Shown: positions 1 through 30,515 of the stretch, one piece after another
Layout: each line of letters begins with the position of its first letter
Numbering within the stretch: the stretch's first letter is position 1
Sequence record: LC768500.1
Strand: one strand, 5' to 3'
Length of the DNA: 64,000 bases
Notes under the pieces: generated by a model
The model's database searches: none
What the model saw: the letters and a program-made list of their open reading frames with translations, nothing else
What the model was told of the DNA's origin: nothing
Position numbers and translations under genes: made by a program

Positions 1-6
1 TTTTTT

Positions 7-72
7 CAAGCAGAAGACGGCATACGAGATAGGCTCCGGTGACTGGAGTTCAGACGTGTGCTCTTCCGATCT
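7..72 (+). other. Illumina P7 + i7 index + TruSeq read-2 adapter (sequencing artefact)
   Basis: Exact CAAGCAGAAGACGGCATACGAGAT (7-30), 8-nt index AGGCTCCG (31-38), GTGACTGGAGTTCAGACGTGTGCTCTTCCGATCT (39-72). Confidence 0.99.
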
Positions 73-83
73 GGCGCGCGCCA

Positions 84-1260: not shown

Positions 1261-1511
1261 TTCCTAACGACAGAGTGATGTTATTAGTAAAGATCTTTGG
1301 ACTCCCTGTTGATTAACTAGCGACCCAACCTCATCTCTTTGAACCTCCTTACCACGAGCGAGATAGCCAAAGTAGCTAGAGATTTTCAGGGGGTTCAATC
1401 CCCATTATTCGTTAATCTTATTAGACCCATTGTCCTTAGCCATGTAGCGACGGCCATTCTCCTGTGACAGACAAGTTTTTGTTCAATGGGATAGATTAAC
1501 GTTTTTCTTCA

Positions 1512-1584
1512 CGTCGTATTATCTGATGAGTCTTCGACGCTAAACAAGACGAAACCTAATGAATCTATTTTATTAGGTCATAAT
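1512..1584 (+). ncRNA. type I hammerhead ribozyme, predicted cleavage after GUC at C1579
   Basis: Core CUGAUGA 1523-29 and GAAA 1551-54; stem I 1518-22/1580-84; stem II 1530-34/1546-50; stem III 1554-60/1572-78; 5-bp pseudoknot CGUCG 1512-16/CGACG 1535-39. Confidence 0.92.
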
Positions 1585-2230
1585 TCAACCTAAGCGTTGA
1601 ACGGGCAGTTAGGGGCAATGGTCCCCGAGGTCTTCAGCTTCTTCGCCTGCCCGCACTAAAAAGTTCTTTCATGATTAGGAGTGCCGCACTCTACGAGCGG
1701 ACAATAAGCAACCGAAAGTGGGAGAGAAAGAAGCGTGTCTGGTCGCTTGCCGGAAAGTTGGTTCAGGCGGGTTTCTTCCCAACCCAAACGACGCTGCCCA
1801 AGATAGGGCTGCAAGTCGTATTAGCGAATTATACCGGTATGCGGGGTTTCCGCGATAAACCGGGTTAGCTACGGGTAAGAAACCGGCCGGAGTAATCAGC
1901 CTTTCGTATTCGGGTAACGTGAGTTATTGTAGAGATATCTCTGAGGGTTAGGCCAACCCCCGACGTTCTCCGAGTCCGAAGGGAAGCTTGCTCAGCTTCG
2001 TAGGAACTCCAAAATCTCAGACGGTCACACCTCGCAATCTTACGGCAGTATGATTGCCTATTCGTCCTTTGTCGCTCACCAAGGGGCGAGTAGGAAACCT
2101 CTGCCACGGCGTTTCGTTTGCCTTTTACCATTGCTTTTGTTATAACCTCTCTGTTTGAGTTGAGTGTTAACTTCCCCAAGAGTGTAACCTGTTATCTCTC
2201 TCTTCGTGAGGAGTCGGAGATAATGGGGTA
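1580..2230 (+). ncRNA. putative large structured non-coding RNA (family unknown)
   Basis: Many nested helices (1602-08/1647-53, 1770-77/1877-84, 1900-06/1977-83, 1908-13/1970-75, 1916-20/1963-67, 2044-49/2053-58); no credible ORF; boundaries approximate. Confidence 0.55.
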
Positions 2231-2249: not shown

Positions 2250-2438
2250 ATGTACACATACCAGTATACCGTGCGATACCGAATACCTAATTCTGTGTTT
2301 ACGACTTACAGCGGAGAAATTACTTCCGACTGTTTGCTCACTAACGCTAATCGCATCTTTGACGTTTTGCGCACTGAGGTTCATAAAGCTACTAACGTTA
2401 ACTCGTTTAGCATTACGAACTTTAAGCTGAAAGAATAA
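2250..2438 (+). CDS. small hypothetical protein (62 aa)
   Basis: Strong SD AGGAGG upstream of ATG. Confidence 0.75.
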   Translation: MYTYQYTVRYRIPNSVFTTYSGEITSDCLLTNANRIFDVLRTEVHKATNVNSFSITNFKLKE

Positions 2439-2606: not shown

Positions 2607-2638
2607 TCCAGTAGGGTTCGGCCCTACTGGACTTTTTT
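2607..2638 (+). terminator. intrinsic terminator
   Basis: TCCAGTAGGG/CCCTACTGGA 10-bp stem followed by T-tract. Confidence 0.8.
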
Positions 2639-2769: not shown

Positions 2770-3732
2770 ATGAGTACATTACGTGTTTACGCGTGCGGCG
2801 GTACTGGTATTAATATCGCGTCTAAATGGATTGCCACCGGTGCGAATACGCTTATTCGTAAAGCCCAGTTCATTGGACTGGACAGCAGTGAAAACAACAA
2901 ACCGCATAACGACGCCTTTAAGGTCGAACGTCCTGAAGGAACTCGTGGCGGCGGTAAGGAACGTAAGCTGATCGGTAAAATTGCCGCCGGGTTTATTGAC
3001 AGTATTTTGACCAAACATAAACCGGGCGATTTCAACCTGATCATCATGAACGCGGCAGGCGCTACCGGGAGTACGTTCGGCCCGACTCTGATCAACCGTC
3101 TCCTCTCTCAAGGTGTTCCGGTTATCGCCCTGGTCGTAGGCGACCTGACCTCTGAACTGGAAAACTACAACACGGTTAAAACGTTTGAAAGCCTGGACAA
3201 CCAGCGCATCAATCTGAACGTGCCGGTTATCATCGACTACGTGGACAACGCCAAATATCCCAGCCGCGGATTGGCCGACAAATACGCCATCGGCCGTCTT
3301 GATATCCTGAGCCTGTTCTTAACCGACGAACATGAAGAAAGCGATTTCCAAGACATCCGGAACCTGTTCTATTACAACCAGGTTACCAAGGCGGCGCCTA
3401 CTCTTGCTCGTATCGACTTCTTGACCGATACTCAGTTAGACAACGTTACTCCAGGGCTGGTTGCTGAATTTGGTTTGTATCGTAAAGCGGACGATATCGG
3501 CAGTCATATTAAAAATCTGGCATACCGTTCGACCGGCGTTATTCAGGAAGGTAGCACTAACTTCCCGGCTGGAATAGAACATCTCCACATGGTCTTTGAT
3601 CATGATGCGACGATCAAAGATATCCTGGTTCTGGTTCAGGATCTTAAAGATATTGAGATCCAAAATAACGAACGTTTTAAATCCGCTCAGCAGGTTGGAA
3701 ACGGCGGCGATGATTCTGGAATGTCCTACTAA
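2770..3732 (+). CDS. phuZ: PhuZ phage tubulin
   Basis: ACGGTG N-terminal loop, GLDSS, GGGK, tubulin signature AAGATGST, acidic C-tail; size and context match. Confidence 0.93.
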   Translation: MSTLRVYACGGTGINIASKWIATGANTLIRKAQFIGLDSSENNKPHNDAFKVERPEGTRGGGKERKLIGKIAAGFIDSILTKHKPGDFNLIIMNAAGATGSTFGPTLINRLLSQGVPVIALVVGDLTSELENYNTVKTFESLDNQRINLNVPVIIDYVDNAKYPSRGLADKYAIGRLDILSLFLTDEHEESDFQDIRNLFYYNQVTKAAPTLARIDFLTDTQLDNVTPGLVAEFGLYRKADDIGSHIKNLAYRSTGVIQEGSTNFPAGIEHLHMVFDHDATIKDILVLVQDLKDIEIQNNERFKSAQQVGNGGDDSGMSY

Positions 3733-3741
3733 GTAAAACAA

Positions 3742-3776
3742 TACTGCTACAGCCCTTCTATGGGGCTGTAGCAGTA
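3742..3776. terminator. long hairpin terminator after phuZ
   Basis: 14-bp stem TACTGCTACAGCCC/GGGCTGTAGCAGTA, downstream T-rich. Confidence 0.8.
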
Positions 3777-14516: not shown

Positions 14517-15946
14517 AAATCAAGAAGTGAGAGTTCCATACTTTTGTGAGAGAAAGCATGAGAACTATTGAGTTTGAAAGAACACCACGTGAAACAGTAC
14601 TTTTTGAAGAAGACGGTTGGGCTCATCACCCGACTATCAAAAACATCCTATTAAAGGAGAAAGGAAACACTTATCGTTTATTTACCGACGGTAAATGGAA
14701 CGAAGTTATTCCCGAACAAAAATCGAGATACATTTATGTATCCTTTGGCGGGATAGAAATACCCCTTCATCAATTAAAGCTGGAAACCTTTTTAGAAAGA
14801 CCAGCTTCTACCGAAGGACTTAAATTGTTAGGCAATCATATCGATGGTGATATCTTTAATAACGACATCGATAACCTTGAATGGGTGACCTACAGAGGAA
14901 ACATCATTCATGCCTATGAATCAGGATTAAGATCAGATAATAAGCCGTTGGTTTTGGTCGATTTACATTCAGGCGAGGAATTTCCGTTCTATAGCCTAAA
15001 TGAATGTGCTAGATATCTGAAACTTAACCCCTCTAAGATAACCCAGTTTTTGAGAAAGAAGAGAAGTTACCCATTCCAGTGGAAATACGATTTCAAACTA
15101 GATGGGTTGTCTCCTAATAATCTGACCTCTAAAGACGTTGGTAAGGCATCGCAAAATAAACCAAGACCTTTTATTATGCGAAACATAAATACCGGCGAAG
15201 AAAGAGAACTTGGGCTCTATCGTTCGATTAGAAGAATTTGGGGCGTGTCGGAAAGAACTCTCCAAAAAGTTTTAAGCGGTAAAATGAAGATAGATGATGT
15301 TTGGGAATTTGTGCCGATTACTGATCCCGACAGACTTATCCATCTTTCTAATACACTGCCAGACATAAAGGAGGCGTTTGATACAACTTCTAATAGAAAA
15401 AATATGGCGGCTAAAAAGTCTAAAGCGATTAAAGTAACGGGTCCTGATGAAACCACGTTCTATTCGTCTATTAAAGACTTTTCACAGAAAAACGGATTCA
15501 ACGCCGCAACCATACAAAAGTTTATTTATAAGAACCCGGGGAAACCCTGGAAGAATTATGTTATCACGTATGTTTAACTCTCACTTCTTTGGCCCAGTAG
15601 ACGCGAAAGCTCTGCTGCGTACTCTCTCTAATTGCTGGAAACTCCTAAAGCTCGTTCACCTCGTATAGAGGGGTCGAAAGACAGAAACAACGAACGAGAT
15701 ATCTCACGCTAACCAATAATGCTAAAAGATAAATAATGGGTTACCTAGCAGCGAACCCTACCTCGGTAGGAGACGTTCAACGACTAGAGCTGAAACGCTC
15801 GTAGGATCCTAGTGTGGATCCGAAATGGGAGAGGACCTAAGTTTGACAGTAGTCAAATATGGTTAAGATATAGTCTGTGCCCTCAGGAAATCTGAGGGAG
15901 GGTGTCTCAGCACACCTGCTCCATATGGAACGGAGTGGACAATCAG
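14517..15946 (+). mobile_element. group I intron A (IA2-like) with HNH ORF in loop L1
   Basis: 5' exon ends in U, omega-G 15946; AAUUGCUGGAAA, GUUCAACGACUA 15775-86, AAGAUAUAGUCU 15865-76; 14-bp stem 14522-35/15576-89 closes the ORF loop. Confidence 0.92.
14558..15577 (+). CDS. intron-encoded HNH homing endonuclease (I-HmuI-like, NUMOD1/IENR1-type repeats)
   Basis: NHIDGDIFNNDIDNLEWVT..N..HA; repeated D..SGE/N.NTGE modules; GTG 14546 is an alternative start. Confidence 0.9.
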   Translation: MRTIEFERTPRETVLFEEDGWAHHPTIKNILLKEKGNTYRLFTDGKWNEVIPEQKSRYIYVSFGGIEIPLHQLKLETFLERPASTEGLKLLGNHIDGDIFNNDIDNLEWVTYRGNIIHAYESGLRSDNKPLVLVDLHSGEEFPFYSLNECARYLKLNPSKITQFLRKKRSYPFQWKYDFKLDGLSPNNLTSKDVGKASQNKPRPFIMRNINTGEERELGLYRSIRRIWGVSERTLQKVLSGKMKIDDVWEFVPITDPDRLIHLSNTLPDIKEAFDTTSNRKNMAAKKSKAIKVTGPDETTFYSSIKDFSQKNGFNAATIQKFIYKNPGKPWKNYVITYV

Positions 15947-28690: not shown

Positions 28691-30515
28691 TCGCCCCACA
28701 AGTATCCGTTATCTTAAAATGATGTTGGGGTTGTAAAGACTTTTTGAAGGAGGTCTTTATGACGGTGAAATTGATAGGAAATCCCGATATAGAAGTAGAC
28801 TTACTCGAAAAGTCTTTATTTATAAAGGGAGAAGAAATTATTGAAGGGAACGCCTTCCGAGTAGATTTATTCGGTGGAAGTTTCCAAGTGACACGGGAAT
28901 GGCTAATCTCGTTCGCTCGTTATAACTTGGATATCCCAAAAGAGCATGTCGATAAAATAACCTTTATTCGATTTGCTAAAACATGGTCTCCGTTTCGTAA
29001 AACCAATAAGCGATACGAAATACCCGTCTTTGACGAACCTATGGTTTCTGAAGACGGATACGCGATCATACCAACCGATTTTGAATATGAAATTAGTCGG
29101 GAAGGAGTTATTAGAAATCGTAAGACCAAACGAATCGCTCCATTGTACGAGAAAGACTACCTTTTTTGTTCGCTAAAGGGAGAGGAAAGGTTACATCGTA
29201 CTGTGGCTCTTGTTTGGTGCTATAACGAGAACTTCGAAACACGACCGATTGTTAATCATAAAGATGGAAATAAGCTTAATCCTCACGCAGATAACTTGGA
29301 ATGGTCATCGTTTTCTTTAAACGCAATTCATGCGTTTAAAGAAGGGCTTAGGGATGATAATAAGCCTTGTGTGATGAGGAACATCTTTACCGGAGAGGTT
29401 ACTGAGTTTTATTCGGTAAGTGCCGTTGCTTATGAATTCGGACTAGGATTTGAGTCAGCCTTCGCGTACCTTAAACGTAAAATGCGGCAATCCCCTTTCA
29501 TGAAAGAATATGAGTTTGTGTTGAAAGGAGATCCTTGGGAAATTCCGTTGGGCGGTATAAAGGGAGTAAGAGGGCGGTATCTCTTCACTATAGAAAAACC
29601 AAATGGTGAAGTGGTATACCGGACCAATATCCCTAAAATCATATCCGAATTCAAGTTATGGAATCTCCCGAGTTGGTCGAAGGATTGCGTTGTAGAAAGG
29701 ATGAAGGAAGAACATCCCGATTGGTCGATTTCTGTTATTGATTACTTTAGGGCGGGCGAGTATCAGGTCAAAAACCTACAAACCGGAGAAGTGATCGATT
29801 TCGTAAAACCCGCCGAAGTATCCGGGTTGATAGGCGTCCCTCGTCAAACCATTAATAAGTGGTTAACCGAAAAACAATTTAACGTCAATCACAACGGTTG
29901 GGTATTCAGGGAGAAATCATCTTCTGAATGGGATGAGGTTTTCCCGAAACCCAATTCTAAGAAAGCGGTATTGGTGACCGACATCAATACAGGTAAAGTG
30001 TCTGAGTTTGAATCCGTAATAGCCGCGGCTTCTCACTTTGGTATTAACAAACGTTCAGTGGGTAGAAGGATACTATCCGGAAGTCTTTTCGAGAGCAAGA
30101 AGTTTAGTTACAAGCCCCAACATCCTTCATAAGACATTTGATATTTGTGAGACAGGGCCGGCTAGGCACGAAAGTCCTAGACCGTTATCTCTTTGAATTG
30201 CTGGAAAAACCACAAAAGTCTGATGCCTGCTTAGCAGGAGGGGATAACCCGGAAATAAGTTCAGACCTGACCTATGCTAACCAATAACGCTAAGGGTCGT
30301 TAAAAAGGGTGGATCAGCAGCGAACCCTACTTCGGTAGGAGGCGTTCAACGACTAAGGCCTAACCAGCCTGTACTGGAGACATGATGTTTCTGGGAAGTG
30401 GAGAGAGACCTAAGTTCGGCTCTAGCCGAATATGGTTAAGATATAGTCTGTTCCCTAATAACACTAGGGCGGGTGTCTTCGCACACCGGGTTCCACGATG
30501 GAACTGGACAAAAAG
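28691..30515 (+). mobile_element. group I intron C (IA2-like) with HNH ORF in loop L1
   Basis: Exon ends GCU, omega-G 30515; GUUCAACGACUA 30344-55, AAGAUAUAGUCU 30438-49; 10-bp stem 28697-706/30140-49. Confidence 0.92.
28759..30132 (+). CDS. intron-encoded HNH homing endonuclease with multiple NUMOD1/IENR1-type repeats
   Basis: RLHRTVA...VNHKDGNKLNPHADNLEW..N..HA; repeats N..TGEV/QTGEV/NTGKV; SD AAGGAGG. Confidence 0.9.
   Translation: MTVKLIGNPDIEVDLLEKSLFIKGEEIIEGNAFRVDLFGGSFQVTREWLISFARYNLDIPKEHVDKITFIRFAKTWSPFRKTNKRYEIPVFDEPMVSEDGYAIIPTDFEYEISREGVIRNRKTKRIAPLYEKDYLFCSLKGEERLHRTVALVWCYNENFETRPIVNHKDGNKLNPHADNLEWSSFSLNAIHAFKEGLRDDNKPCVMRNIFTGEVTEFYSVSAVAYEFGLGFESAFAYLKRKMRQSPFMKEYEFVLKGDPWEIPLGGIKGVRGRYLFTIEKPNGEVVYRTNIPKIISEFKLWNLPSWSKDCVVERMKEEHPDWSISVIDYFRAGEYQVKNLQTGEVIDFVKPAEVSGLIGVPRQTINKWLTEKQFNVNHNGWVFREKSSSEWDEVFPKPNSKKAVLVTDINTGKVSEFESVIAAASHFGINKRSVGRRILSGSLFESKKFSYKPQHPS

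Follow-up and report, generated by a model that had tools for sequence, protein, structure and literature searches.

Hammerhead ribozymes have been known from phage intergenic regions since 2011, and their purpose there is still largely guesswork. Many were described in the intergenic regions of phages and prophages (PMC3088659), and it was estimated that approximately 40% of hammerheads use a pseudoknot of the type considered below (Perreault et al. 2011, PMC3088659). The same work indicated that fast hammerheads need pseudoknots (PMC3088659) and proposed a role for hammerheads in cutting phage transcripts down to mRNAs of gene length (Perreault et al., PMC3088659). In Caudoviricetes, theta (minimal HDV-like) ribozymes immediately follow tRNA genes on their 3' side (Kienbeck et al. 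2024, PMC10879173) and have been proposed to free RNA processing from host RNases (PMC10879173). In addition, phages encode ROOL and GOLLD, large structured noncoding RNAs of unknown function that are "often near tRNA islands" (bioRxiv 10.1101/2024.12.08.627333).

The locus described here is located in the Klebsiella jumbo phage phiKp_32, whose genome is 251,460 bp (~251 kb). The window, i.e., the whole stretch of 64,000 nucleotides that was analyzed (record LC768500.1), is part of this genome. phiKp_32 is a relative of phage Miami, and the annotation of Miami lists PhuZ and a nuclear shell protein. This agrees with the sequence-only reading, an earlier interpretation of the bare window, which had assigned the DNA to a jumbo, nucleus-forming phage. 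The following parts of a hammerhead were identified:

1512-1584, + strand: complete type I hammerhead with a loop II pseudoknot (from sequence and descriptor)
1512-1516, + strand: 5' arm of the pseudoknot, CGUCG, pairing with 1536-1540 (5 bp)
1518-1522, + strand: 5' strand of stem I, AUUAU, pairing with 1580-1584 through five A-U/U-A pairs
1523-1529, + strand: catalytic core CUGAUGA (C3 to A9), unchanged in all 16 lineages
1530-1534 with 1546-1550, + strand: stem II, 5 bp, opening with the G10.1-C11.1 pair
1535-1545, + strand: loop II, 11 nt, with CGACG (1536-1540) as the 3' arm of the pseudoknot, plus a conserved YUAA
1551-1554, + strand: catalytic core GAAA (G12, A13, A14, A15.1), invariant
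1554-1563 with 1569-1578, + strand: stem III, ten pairs with loop UCUAU (hairpin 1554..1578), opening with A15.1-U16.1
1577-1579, + strand: cleavage triplet GUC, with the predicted scissile bond C1579/A1580
1580-1584, + strand: 3' strand of stem I, AUAAU, which would become the first five bases of the downstream RNA after cleavage

The core that defines hammerheads (C3-U4-G5-A6-N7-G8-A9 and G12-A13-A14) was present at 1523-1529 and 1551-1554. It is surrounded by three helices of 5, 5 and 10 bp, with G10.1-C11.1 and A15.1-U16.1 as closing pairs and N1.1-N2.1 paired, and GUC at 1577-1579 is an N-U-H triplet (H not G). The complete hammerhead (CUGAUGA, GAAA, GUC site and three stems) and the 5-bp pairing of CGUCG with CGACG of loop II thus lie where the sequence-only reading had placed them. 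A type I descriptor had a single match in the window when both strands were scanned, against a chance expectation of 0.003 per window; this rate was derived from 300 Markov-simulated copies of the window, none of which had stems as long as those of 1512-1584. A relaxed scan for all three topologies revealed no second convincing hammerhead in the 251,460-bp genome. The minimum-energy nested fold is more stable than the pseudoknot-free hammerhead fold (-17.6 versus -10.2 kcal/mol), although it contains the pseudoknot helix and stem III, both of which are parts of the active fold. Stem I, consisting of just five A-U pairs, is weak.

Relatives were recovered with DNA patterns built from the ribozyme. 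We identified 16 homologous copies in other phage genomes and metagenomic contigs, with an invariant core in 16 lineages. No family member was detected among 185,579 cellular genomes; members were found solely in free phage genomes and metagenomic contigs. The family spans Schitoviridae and several jumbo-phage genera, infecting Klebsiella, Erwinia, Pseudomonas and probably Salmonella, and is not specific to nucleus-forming phages. It includes Erwinia phage RAY and Pseudomonas phage ZC08 (70.8 kb, Schitoviridae), where the ribozyme resides inside a tRNA array. Given its occurrence in ZC08, the suggestion of the sequence-only reading that the ribozyme is linked to RNA export through a protein shell is not supported. 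Searches of IMG/VR for relatives by the single proteins PhuZ and gp267 found nothing, BLAST of the noncoding block against the phage collection returned only seven Miamivirus-like records, and BLAST between lineages detected the ribozyme alone.

Conservation in related phages, which the sequence-only reading had offered as a check, was observed: the motif was unchanged in five related phage sequences except for A/G at 1518 (a stem I pair of A-U or G-U), and the ribozyme is invariant across Miamivirus, within the most conserved part of the region. In the whole family, CUGAUGA and GAA(A) were invariant in an alignment of 15 sequences and also in lineages L066 and L067. Every lineage had GUC, GUA or GUU as its cleavage triplet; GUG did not occur. 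Stem II was closed by G-C in 15 of 15 sequences, stem III opened with A-U followed by C-G in 18 of 18 rows, and the 2.1-1.1 pair of stem I was also present in 18 of 18 rows; positions 2.1-1.1 and 2.2-1.2 were always paired, with three and four pair types, respectively. Three to five pair types per position were seen in stems I and III, and the base of stem III covaries in relatives in which this element ranges from 13 to 108 nt. For stem II, changes on both sides occurred in four of five pairs. Cells of stem II and the pseudoknot were 92% paired, compared with 21-53% when the partner strand was slid; both-side changes were found in 22 of these cells versus 7.0 in shuffles, and the covariation score was 0.383 versus 0.156 in shuffles (0/500).

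A pseudoknot of 5-6 bp was present in all members, and two of its positions covary among the homologues. One pair was C-G in 10, U-A in 3 and A-U in 2 sequences and unpaired in none, and a second position was G-C in most members and U-A in L066. The two arms were complementary in five lineages found without specifying either arm (L037, L039, L040, L045 and L047), and also in L066, a member found through PhuZ. Because compensatory changes affect every helix as well as the pseudoknot among 16 distinct homologues, which provides the decisive support, we conclude that 1512-1584 is a genuine hammerhead, with predicted self-cleavage; it represents a phage-only subgroup overlooked by standard RNA databases.

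With gathering thresholds, an Rfam search for hammerheads, also proposed by the sequence-only reading, returned nothing for the window or for 13 loci of the family. Under permissive settings, Hammerhead_3 (RF00008) scored 24.2 bits (gathering threshold 48.5) with the wrong topology, and RAGATH-1-hammerhead (RF03152) scored 21 bits (threshold 56.3) with the topology that the sequence-only reading had proposed. The gathering threshold is a cut-off set by curators, not a biochemical criterion, and the missing match reflects limits of the models rather than absence of a ribozyme. A well-defined phage-only subgroup therefore eludes curated models; as a result, annotation pipelines leave "empty" gaps of 0.3-1.3 kb or spurious ORFs at such loci, as in the cultured phages Miami, RAY and ZC08.

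The second component of the locus is located immediately downstream of the predicted cleavage site:

1580..2116, + strand: conserved structured RNA of ~537 nt, with its predicted end at a variable patch (2117-2158)
1755..1760, + strand: motif M1, AAGUUG, leading a series of three collinear motifs common to other lineages
1893..1913, + strand: 5' strand of a conserved helix with motif M2, CAGCCU (outer part 1893-1897, loop AG 1898-1899, inner part 1900-1913)
1970..1990, + strand: 3' strand of this helix with motif M3, GGGAAGC (inner part 1970-1983, loop AA 1984-1985, outer part 1986-1990)

Positions 1601-2050 were 97-99% identical to KPN8 and VB_ZK_P1, compared with 73-88% for the neighboring gene. 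The folding z score of this block was -3.2 on the + strand versus -2.1 on the - strand, and 9 of 10 variable paired positions stay paired, including a double change at 1838/1859. At every locus, 190-670 nt following the predicted cut contain no plausible ORF. M2 and M3 form one covarying helix with a conserved AG/AA internal loop in 10 lineages, the window included. This helix was 90.9% paired in register versus 41-64% when slid, and at most 78% paired after strand swaps between lineages (0/2000 permutations), with at least three pair types at 10 of 11 positions. Within Miamivirus, C1970U retains a G-U pair and C1976A converts a U.C mismatch to U-A. In L065 (PhuZ homologue at 74% identity), the contig starts 243 nt upstream of the small ORF and holds only 36 nt of the RNA; its bases 1-36 match 1964-1999 at 97%.

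M1, M2 and M3 occurred in this order in 6 of 13 lineages, compared with 0.009 in shuffles, for motifs that were picked after inspection of the data. L008, L022 and L039 lacked the three motifs and had a protein gene ~200 nt downstream. Because a covariance model of the L004/L037/L047 downstream RNA detected only its own group, what we claim across lineages, from sequence comparison, is a shared core helix and motifs, not one family alignable over its full length. There was no relevant Rfam match, ROOL and GOLLD included, in the downstream RNA (searched as 1261-2800) at E-values up to 10, and no match at gathering thresholds in 13 loci; the compact ZC08 RNA (~250 nt), searched up to an E-value of 10, matched nothing but miRNA models, and these as generic hairpins.

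Several other interpretations of the downstream block were considered. A protein-coding function of 1580-2116 is unlikely: ORFs in this region, including minus-strand ORFs annotated in Miami and KPN8, had no Pfam match and are unannotated in VB_ZK_P1, and the substitutions keep G-U pairs of the + strand. As for RNA excision or circularization by a second ribozyme, a single hammerhead is present at each locus, and the searches matched no further ribozyme family. A consistent protein partner was not found either; neighbors are an amidoligase-like gene or genes of unknown function.

The wider surroundings of the ribozyme in phiKp_32 contain five additional features:

1389..1403, + strand: T-arm-like, terminator-like hairpin GGGGG-UUCAAUC-CCCC, ~120 nt upstream of the ribozyme (terminator scan)
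1487..1511, + strand: conserved leader adjoining the 5' side of the ribozyme (conservation profile and list of variable columns)
2250..2438, + strand: first plausible downstream gene, an ORF of 62 aa with a strong ribosome-binding site
2607..2631, + strand: strong intrinsic terminator, an 11-bp stem followed by a T run (terminator scan)
2770-3732: PhuZ, located after the terminator at 2607-2631

Neither the window nor the rest of the phiKp_32 genome contains a tRNA gene according to ARAGORN. The hairpin at 1389-1403 gave no cloverleaf in the same searches, and the Rfam tRNA model had no match in 1261-2800 even at E-values up to 10; this hairpin may be what is left of a tRNA-like element, or else a weak terminator. 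The conservation profile revealed a poorly conserved patch, 1445-1486, between the 526-1260 gene and the ribozyme, and the highly conserved unit starts past it, at 1487. No promoter was definable near the ribozyme: k-mer counting yielded no promoter motif and placed none of the seven + strand occurrences of TATATTAC close to the ribozyme, and a sigma-70 scan had no match upstream of it. The sequence-only reading had supposed that the ribozyme separates the 526-1260 mRNA from the downstream RNA. This view is weakened by the intervening hairpin and variable patch and by the lack of a definable promoter, and also by the other phages, in which a tRNA or tRNA-like element, not an mRNA, lies upstream. 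Downstream, homologues of the 62-aa ORF occupy the equivalent position in L031, L065 and L066, and the terminator at 2607-2631 is the likely end of a transcription unit with ribozyme, RNA and small ORF.

Our main reading, to which we assign a probability of roughly 0.7, is that the ribozyme gives the structured RNA (1580 to ~2116) its freed 5'-OH end. A transcript of the + strand, from a putative start ahead of the ribozyme, would fold into the hammerhead, with the active fold presumably locked by the pseudoknot that joins loop II to the bases immediately preceding stem I, and would cut itself between C1579 and A1580. The upstream fragment would keep the ribozyme body and end in a 2',3'-cyclic phosphate, and the downstream fragment would begin at A1580 with a 5'-hydroxyl. 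What is cut away upstream would be a tRNA or tRNA-like element in most lineages, of which only a T-arm-like remnant may persist in phiKp_32. The released fragment is predicted to be the conserved, highly structured RNA of ~540 nt whose core is the long helix with the AG/AA internal loop. The role of the ribozyme would then be to provide a precise RNA 5' end without host nucleases, detached from the upstream transcript. A defined 5'-OH on the downstream RNA, anticipated by the sequence-only reading from the cut at 1579/1580, is predicted by hammerhead chemistry and fits the presence of a conserved RNA partner; its further suggestion, protection of this RNA from RNase E, is plausible.

An alternative, which we consider unlikely, is that the hammerhead serves mRNA or operon processing, i.e., that the cut gives the 526-1260 mRNA and the downstream message (the 2250-2438 ORF, perhaps PhuZ) independent stabilities, with 1580-2249 being a long regulatory 5' UTR. 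Processing into gene-length mRNAs is the role that Perreault et al. proposed for phage hammerheads (PMC3088659). All genes around the locus in the window are on the + strand, and because the downstream RNA continues into the small ORF with no recognizable terminator between them, a long processed 5' UTR would explain it equally well. The order of ribozyme, long noncoding stretch, small ORF and PhuZ is kept in L031 and L066 (PhuZ 47-49% identical), PhuZ lies 3 kb downstream in RAY too, and M3 of L066 can pair over the start codon of the small ORF; in L008, L022 and L039, the gene ~200 nt downstream is amidoligase-like. However, the next genes are tRNAs in ZC08, L067 and L040, directly following the downstream RNA in the first two, and the RNA of the L004 group ends at a terminator before any ORF; L004 has an intrinsic terminator ahead of any gene, as does, less cleanly, L055. 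The covarying helix is kept whatever gene follows. Within the window, the terminator-like hairpin and the variable patch part the 526-1260 gene from the ribozyme, and the strong terminator at 2607-2631 parts the small ORF from PhuZ.

It is also conceivable, and in our view rather improbable, that the family evolved to cut 3' trailers of phage tRNAs or tRNA-like elements, in which case the phiKp_32 copy would have been left behind next to a decayed tRNA, with the downstream RNA being incidental. A tRNA or tRNA-like element is indeed the usual upstream neighbor of the ribozyme. The CCA end of a tRNA-Leu runs straight into the pseudoknot arm in L039, a tRNA-Arg ends 7 nt ahead of this arm in L067 and a tRNA-Met ~15 nt ahead of it in ZC08; acceptor/T-arm minihelices or a cloverleaf are located immediately upstream in L040, L047, L004 and L037. 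The T-arm-like hairpin at 1389-1403 of the window and the precedent of theta ribozymes (PMC10879173) point in the same direction. On the other hand, cleavage by a type I hammerhead falls at the 3' side of the ribozyme and would leave its entire 65-150 nt on the tRNA, so that host nucleases would still be needed for its removal. Moreover, the ribozyme is invariant throughout Miamivirus although phiKp_32 lacks tRNA genes altogether, and in L008 and L022 a protein gene, with no tRNA, is directly upstream.

Finally, a chance match or a dead relic without present function, which would fit the scores below the curated Rfam thresholds and the weak stem I, is close to refuted already by the 0.003 matches expected per window, the confinement of the triplet to NUH, and an invariant core with compensatory changes in four helices across 16 lineages from Schitoviridae and several jumbo-phage genera.

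Release of a structured RNA with a ribozyme-made 5' end can be extended to the family as a whole. We tentatively propose, at somewhat less than even odds, a previously undescribed phage module in which a tRNA or tRNA-like element is followed by a type I hammerhead with pseudoknot and then by a structured RNA of 210-540 nt as the functional product; it would be common to nucleus-forming jumbo phages (Miamivirus, and Agricanvirus with RAY) and to N4-like Schitoviridae. If so, the module RNA would have its own role in infection and would be a third kind of tRNA-island-associated phage RNA beside ROOL and GOLLD, and the first such RNA with a ribozyme-made 5' end. The hammerhead itself belongs to a known class, and it is the combination of ribozyme and RNA that appears to be undescribed; our searches of the open-access literature (PubMed Central and bioRxiv) revealed no earlier description of hammerheads from jumbo or nucleus-forming phages, or next to phage tRNAs. 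The recurrent arrangement, in which the ribozyme is preceded by a tRNA or tRNA-like element and followed by a structured RNA, makes the purpose of the ribozyme testable. The structured RNA is itself a candidate for a new family, marked by its conserved internal-loop motif, and is found in experimentally tractable phages that grow on laboratory hosts. If this RNA is functional, phages would make an RNA with a defined 5'-OH without host nucleases, which bears on RNA stability and RNA repair and is possibly relevant to defense and counter-defense.

The ribozyme shares with the pseudoknotted type I hammerheads described previously (PMC3088659; Rfam clan CL00010, Hammerhead_1 RF00163) its 11-nt catalytic core, a three-way junction whose stem I is open, an NUH site and a pseudoknot of 5-6 bp in place of a loop-loop tertiary contact (PMC3088659). 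Unlike known type I hammerheads, the phage subgroup scores 21-24 bits, far under the Rfam thresholds of 48.5-56.3, and has one copy per locus rather than several gene-flanking copies. Its signature is a GUCG(U) arm at a fixed spacing of 6 nt from CUGAUGA (5 nt in L037), together with a stem II of 5 bp and a loop II of 11 nt with the sequence CGAC-N-YUAA. RAGATH-1 (RF03152) is the sole Rfam model with the correct topology (CUGAUGA, stem II, CGAAAC, stem III, GUC, stem I); however, only its positions 25-77 match, and the 5' part of the model is lacking in the window ribozyme. The downstream RNA resembles ROOL and GOLLD in being phage-encoded, structured, noncoding and found in a similar tRNA-side setting; it differs in that it matches neither model and that its conserved core consists of one long helix interrupted by an AG/AA internal loop. 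Theta ribozymes are likewise a small self-cleaving class found directly 3' of phage tRNAs, with cleavage of the hammerheads being predicted. They have been described in gut phages of Bacteroidota and Bacillota, whereas the hosts of phages with the hammerhead family are Klebsiella, Erwinia, Pseudomonas and probably Salmonella. The two also differ in geometry: the HDV-like theta ribozyme cuts at its 5' edge and frees the 3' end of the tRNA, whereas the type I hammerhead would cut at its 3' edge and free the RNA downstream.

A pseudoknotted hammerhead had been proposed in Klebsiella phage phiKp_32 (251,460 bp, LC768500.1) from sequence alone, and on inspection of the sequence all of its elements were found at the coordinates proposed:

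1512-1516, + strand, 5′ arm of the pseudoknot (CGUCG)
1518-1522 with 1580-1584, + strand, stem I
1523-1529, + strand, core CUGAUGA
1530-1534 with 1546-1550, + strand, stem II
1535-1545, + strand, loop II, containing CGACG at 1536-1540
1551-1554, + strand, core GAAA
1554-1563 with 1569-1578, + strand, stem III
1577-1579, + strand, GUC cleavage triplet

Because the GUC triplet occupies 1577-1579, cleavage is predicted between 1579 and 1580. The 64-kb window covers positions 1-64000 of this genome. The complete genome was pieced together from the window and four more stretches, and a relaxed scan of it for all three topologies detected no second convincing hammerhead; the remaining matches rely on stems of 3 bp combined with very long loops, and one that was compared with the annotation lay within a gene. 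The window ribozyme was not reported by Rfam at gathering thresholds. At a permissive threshold, Hammerhead_3 scored 24.2 bits with a wrong alignment topology and RAGATH-1-hammerhead scored 21 bits with the correct one.

Homologues were recovered from IMG/VR and metagenomes with a DNA pattern that specified the core and CGACG in loop II and left the 5′ arm unspecified. In every match with a real stem II, a complementary arm, GUCG, lay at a constant distance from CUGAUGA, and chance matches lacking stem II also lacked this arm. A second pattern, in which neither pseudoknot arm was specified, yielded members with arms UGUCG/CGACA and AGUCG/CGACU, and L066, a sequence reached via PhuZ homology alone, carries ACGUCU/AGACGU. 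In total, the family comprises sixteen distinct lineages: the window group (including the 253-kb metagenomic contig L026) and the phage genomes or contigs L004/L006, L005/L032, L008, L022, L029, L031, L037, L039, L040/L041, L045, L047, L055/L059, L056/L057, L066 and L067. In a 15-sequence alignment, stem II and pseudoknot cells were 92% paired, compared with 21-53% when the partner strand was slid; all but one of the five stem II pairs showed two-sided changes, and one pseudoknot pair occurred as C-G (10 sequences), U-A (3) or A-U (2) and was never unpaired. Stems I and III covaried likewise across the family, and the A15.1-U16.1 pair and the C-G pair following it were invariant. Cleavage triplets were GUC, GUA or GUU, never GUG, and stem III accepted insertions, the element reaching ~108 nt. 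Rfam also missed every family member, and two patterns run against 185,579 genomes of bacteria and archaea found no copies. Diversity of the family is under-sampled because homologues were gathered with exact-match patterns; most contigs were covered over their first stretches. At the sequence level, the window ribozyme and its homologues have everything that defines a hammerhead, and pseudoknots of this sort are required for fast hammerhead cleavage (PMC3088659). We consider it very likely that the window element is a functional hammerhead.

Over the non-coding query 1261-2780, YC1, BUCTxx100 and Miami were 99-100% identical to the window, and KPN8 and VB_ZK_P1 were ~93% identical. The phage had been taken for a jumbo phage with a protein shell, correctly, since the Miami RefSeq annotation lists the tubulin PhuZ (2770-3732 in the window) and a nuclear shell protein. 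Erwinia phage RAY (L057), a nucleus-forming Agricanvirus that has been studied well, carries the ribozyme in the 1,268 nt that separate gp203 from gp204 (L068 3531-4798; record about 167689-168956). This stretch has no annotation and contains a T-arm-like hairpin, the hammerhead (stem III element ~106 nt) and ~510 nt of RNA with the three motifs described below; the sole annotated tRNA of RAY lies 2.5 kb upstream of the ribozyme and PhuZ 3 kb downstream. This region is also present in Ea35-70, Special G, Deimos-Minion and several other phages, and the L004 group is similar to Erwinia phages pEa_SNUABM_37 and pEa_SNUABM_48 and Salmonella phage SA002. The family is not bound to the phage nucleus, since a member occurs in Pseudomonas phage ZC08 (L045; Schitoviridae, 70.8 kb), where ribozyme plus downstream RNA occupy the 323 nt, left without annotation, that separate tRNA-Met from tRNA-Asn.

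Several other features of these genomes were observed. Over the same non-coding query, the record OR529409.1 (named Stenotrophomonas phage BUCTxx100) shares 99.7% identity with phiKp_32, YC1 and Miami, and identity across the first 12 kb is ~96%; Stenotrophomonas is an odd host assignment for genomes so alike. Within window 1-79, the first ~75 bases match, at 90-97% identity, terminal or internal parts of many unrelated phage records (phages of Bacillus, Staphylococcus, Enterococcus, Caulobacter, Mycobacterium and others), and this segment looks like residual adapter or library sequence, not phage DNA. Two group I introns (15572-15898 and 30118-30469, + strand; 58.6 and 51.3 bits) exceeded the Rfam gathering threshold. 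Directly 3′ of PhuZ, a perfect 15-bp hairpin (3742-3776) scored as an intrinsic terminator on both strands, and the Miami annotation likewise marks a terminator directly after PhuZ. Outside the window, the phiKp_32 record also annotates two IS200/IS605-type TnpB RNA-guided endonuclease genes (119897-121033 and 147036-148172; L062) and a HigA-family antitoxin gene (163811-164101; L063).

In every lineage, the predicted cut is followed by 190-670 nt without a plausible ORF, and a hairpin begins no more than a few bases from it. In the L004 group, the RNA is ~210 nt long and has two hairpins, the first of them long and irregular, followed by an intrinsic terminator; it shows 15 compensated pairs. 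In the window, a ~630-nt conserved unit is flanked by variable patches (1445-1486 and 2117-2158); 1601-2050 is 97-99% identical to KPN8 and VB_ZK_P1, and the neighbouring protein gene shows 73-88% DNA and ~83% protein identity to these phages. The predicted fold of 1580-2120 has z = -3.2 (-195 kcal/mol) on the + strand and z = -2.1 (-181 kcal/mol) on the - strand. Pairing was kept at 9 of 10 variable positions within predicted helices, mostly by C/U changes opposite G, which works on the + strand only, and 1838/1859 shows a full double change. The Miami and KPN8 records place hypothetical minus-strand CDSs over the block (1609-1788 and 1865-2179), and VB_ZK_P1 annotates no CDS on it. These CDSs are probably spurious because ORFs inside the conserved block have no Pfam matches and the substitutions are consistent with an RNA on the + strand.

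Neither BLAST nor a covariance model built on the L004-group RNA connected the lineages. Three short motifs were found in constant order, AAGUUG, CAGCC(U/G) and GGGAAG. The full ordered set was present in 6 of 13 lineages, one of them the window, whereas shuffles averaged 0.009 and never exceeded 1; the motifs (not their order) had been picked after inspection of the data. The count was 0 in each of the reverse-complement, upstream and further-downstream controls. Independent single-sequence folds placed motifs 2 and 3 on the two strands of one helix in 5 of 6 lineages; for contig L031 the minimum-energy fold differs, and a register table gives the same pairing. The element was aligned in register for ten lineages:

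Part 1, outer helix of 3-5 bp
Part 2, internal loop, with 5′-strand AG facing 3′-strand AA (replaced by AU or GU in the L004 group and ZC08)
Part 3, inner helix of 12-14 bp, always opening C-G, C-G, U.G (G.U in ZC08)
1893-1913 with 1970-1990, + strand, the element in the window

Beyond its opening, the inner helix is freely variable. Its positions 4-14 were 90.9% paired in register versus 41-64% when slid; strands swapped between lineages gave at most 78.2%, none of 2000 permutations matched the observed value, and at least three pair types were present at 10 of 11 positions. Within Miamivirus, C1970U retains a G-U pair and C1976A converts a U.C mismatch to U-A; more compensated pairs were contributed by ZC08 and L067. 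No Rfam family was found for the downstream RNA, even at permissive thresholds.

Type I hammerheads cleave at their own 3′ side, leaving a 2′,3′-cyclic phosphate upstream and a 5′-OH downstream. Because of this geometry, the ribozyme would be retained on the upstream fragment, which would end in the cyclic phosphate, and by the same chemistry the downstream RNA would begin at A1580 with a 5′-OH. The downstream RNA would be the product whose 5′ end the ribozyme sets; this fits the cleavage geometry, the structured non-coding RNA that constantly follows the ribozyme, and the conserved helix. Its 3′ end may be generated by RNase P at the next tRNA in the tRNA arrays of ZC08 and L067, and by the terminator in the L004 group; in the window, the conserved block stops near 2116 and the next strong terminator (2607-2631) lies past a 62-aa ORF. 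Judged from sequence, we assign a probability of about 0.7 to the hammerhead defining the 5′ end of a structured downstream RNA.

Processing of an mRNA or a 5′ UTR is an unlikely alternative. Three related contigs (L008, L022 and L039) are without the downstream motifs and have a conserved ORF of ~200 aa, about 190-215 nt past the cleavage site, with a weak amidoligase match (PF12224, phrog_2443); there the ribozyme may serve another downstream partner.

tRNAs or tRNA-like structures precede the ribozyme in several lineages. A tRNA-Leu gene ends against the first base of the pseudoknot arm in L039, tRNA-Arg ends 7 nt ahead of it in L067, and ZC08 has two tRNAs before the ribozyme and seven after. 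Acceptor/T-arm minihelices lie 2-3 nt upstream in L040 and L047, and T-arm-like hairpins ~100 nt upstream in L055 and RAY. Directly 5′ of the ribozyme in L004, a 273-kb viral contig, 2803-2905 (+) folds into a cloverleaf-like element: its acceptor stem has 7 bp, D- and T-arms are present, and an inserted hairpin enlarges the anticodon arm. ARAGORN did not call it as a tRNA; it may be a tRNA mimic or a tRNA of unusual type, for instance one with an intron. The possibility that the ribozyme processes tRNA trailers, the window copy being a relic, is slightly less probable than mRNA processing. No tRNA genes were found in the entire phiKp_32 genome, and the sole upstream tRNA-like feature in the window is a T-arm-like hairpin (1389-1403), also in the terminator scan list. 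Chance is very improbable, a type I descriptor matching the window once (both strands) versus 0.003 times per window in simulated sequence.

The 13-nt ACCTCCTTACCAC (1343-1355) is identical in the distantly related L066 (470-482), lies upstream of both ribozymes and resembles 16S rRNA at its anti-Shine-Dalgarno end. In the window, GAACCTCCT (1341-1349) is complementary over all 9 nt to AGGAGGTTC (2238-2246), the ribosome-binding site of the 62-aa ORF; this complementarity is absent in L066.

Phage intergenic hammerheads with pseudoknots were described in 2011 (PMC3088659), and the window ribozyme is an ordinary member of this known class in every defining respect. What is new is a hammerhead subgroup overlooked by curated models, its occurrence in nucleus-forming jumbo phages (no earlier report was found in the open-access PubMed Central and bioRxiv papers searched), its position next to tRNAs or tRNA-like elements, and its constant pairing with a structured RNA having a conserved core. 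The nearest analogies are theta ribozymes and the ROOL and GOLLD RNAs. ROOL and GOLLD are large phage RNAs without known function, often near tRNA islands (bioRxiv 10.1101/2024.12.08.627333). Theta (HDV-like) ribozymes, which occur in gut phages, also follow tRNAs on their 3′ side but have their cleavage site towards the tRNA (PMC10879173), whereas the hammerhead described here would cut at its own 3′ side.
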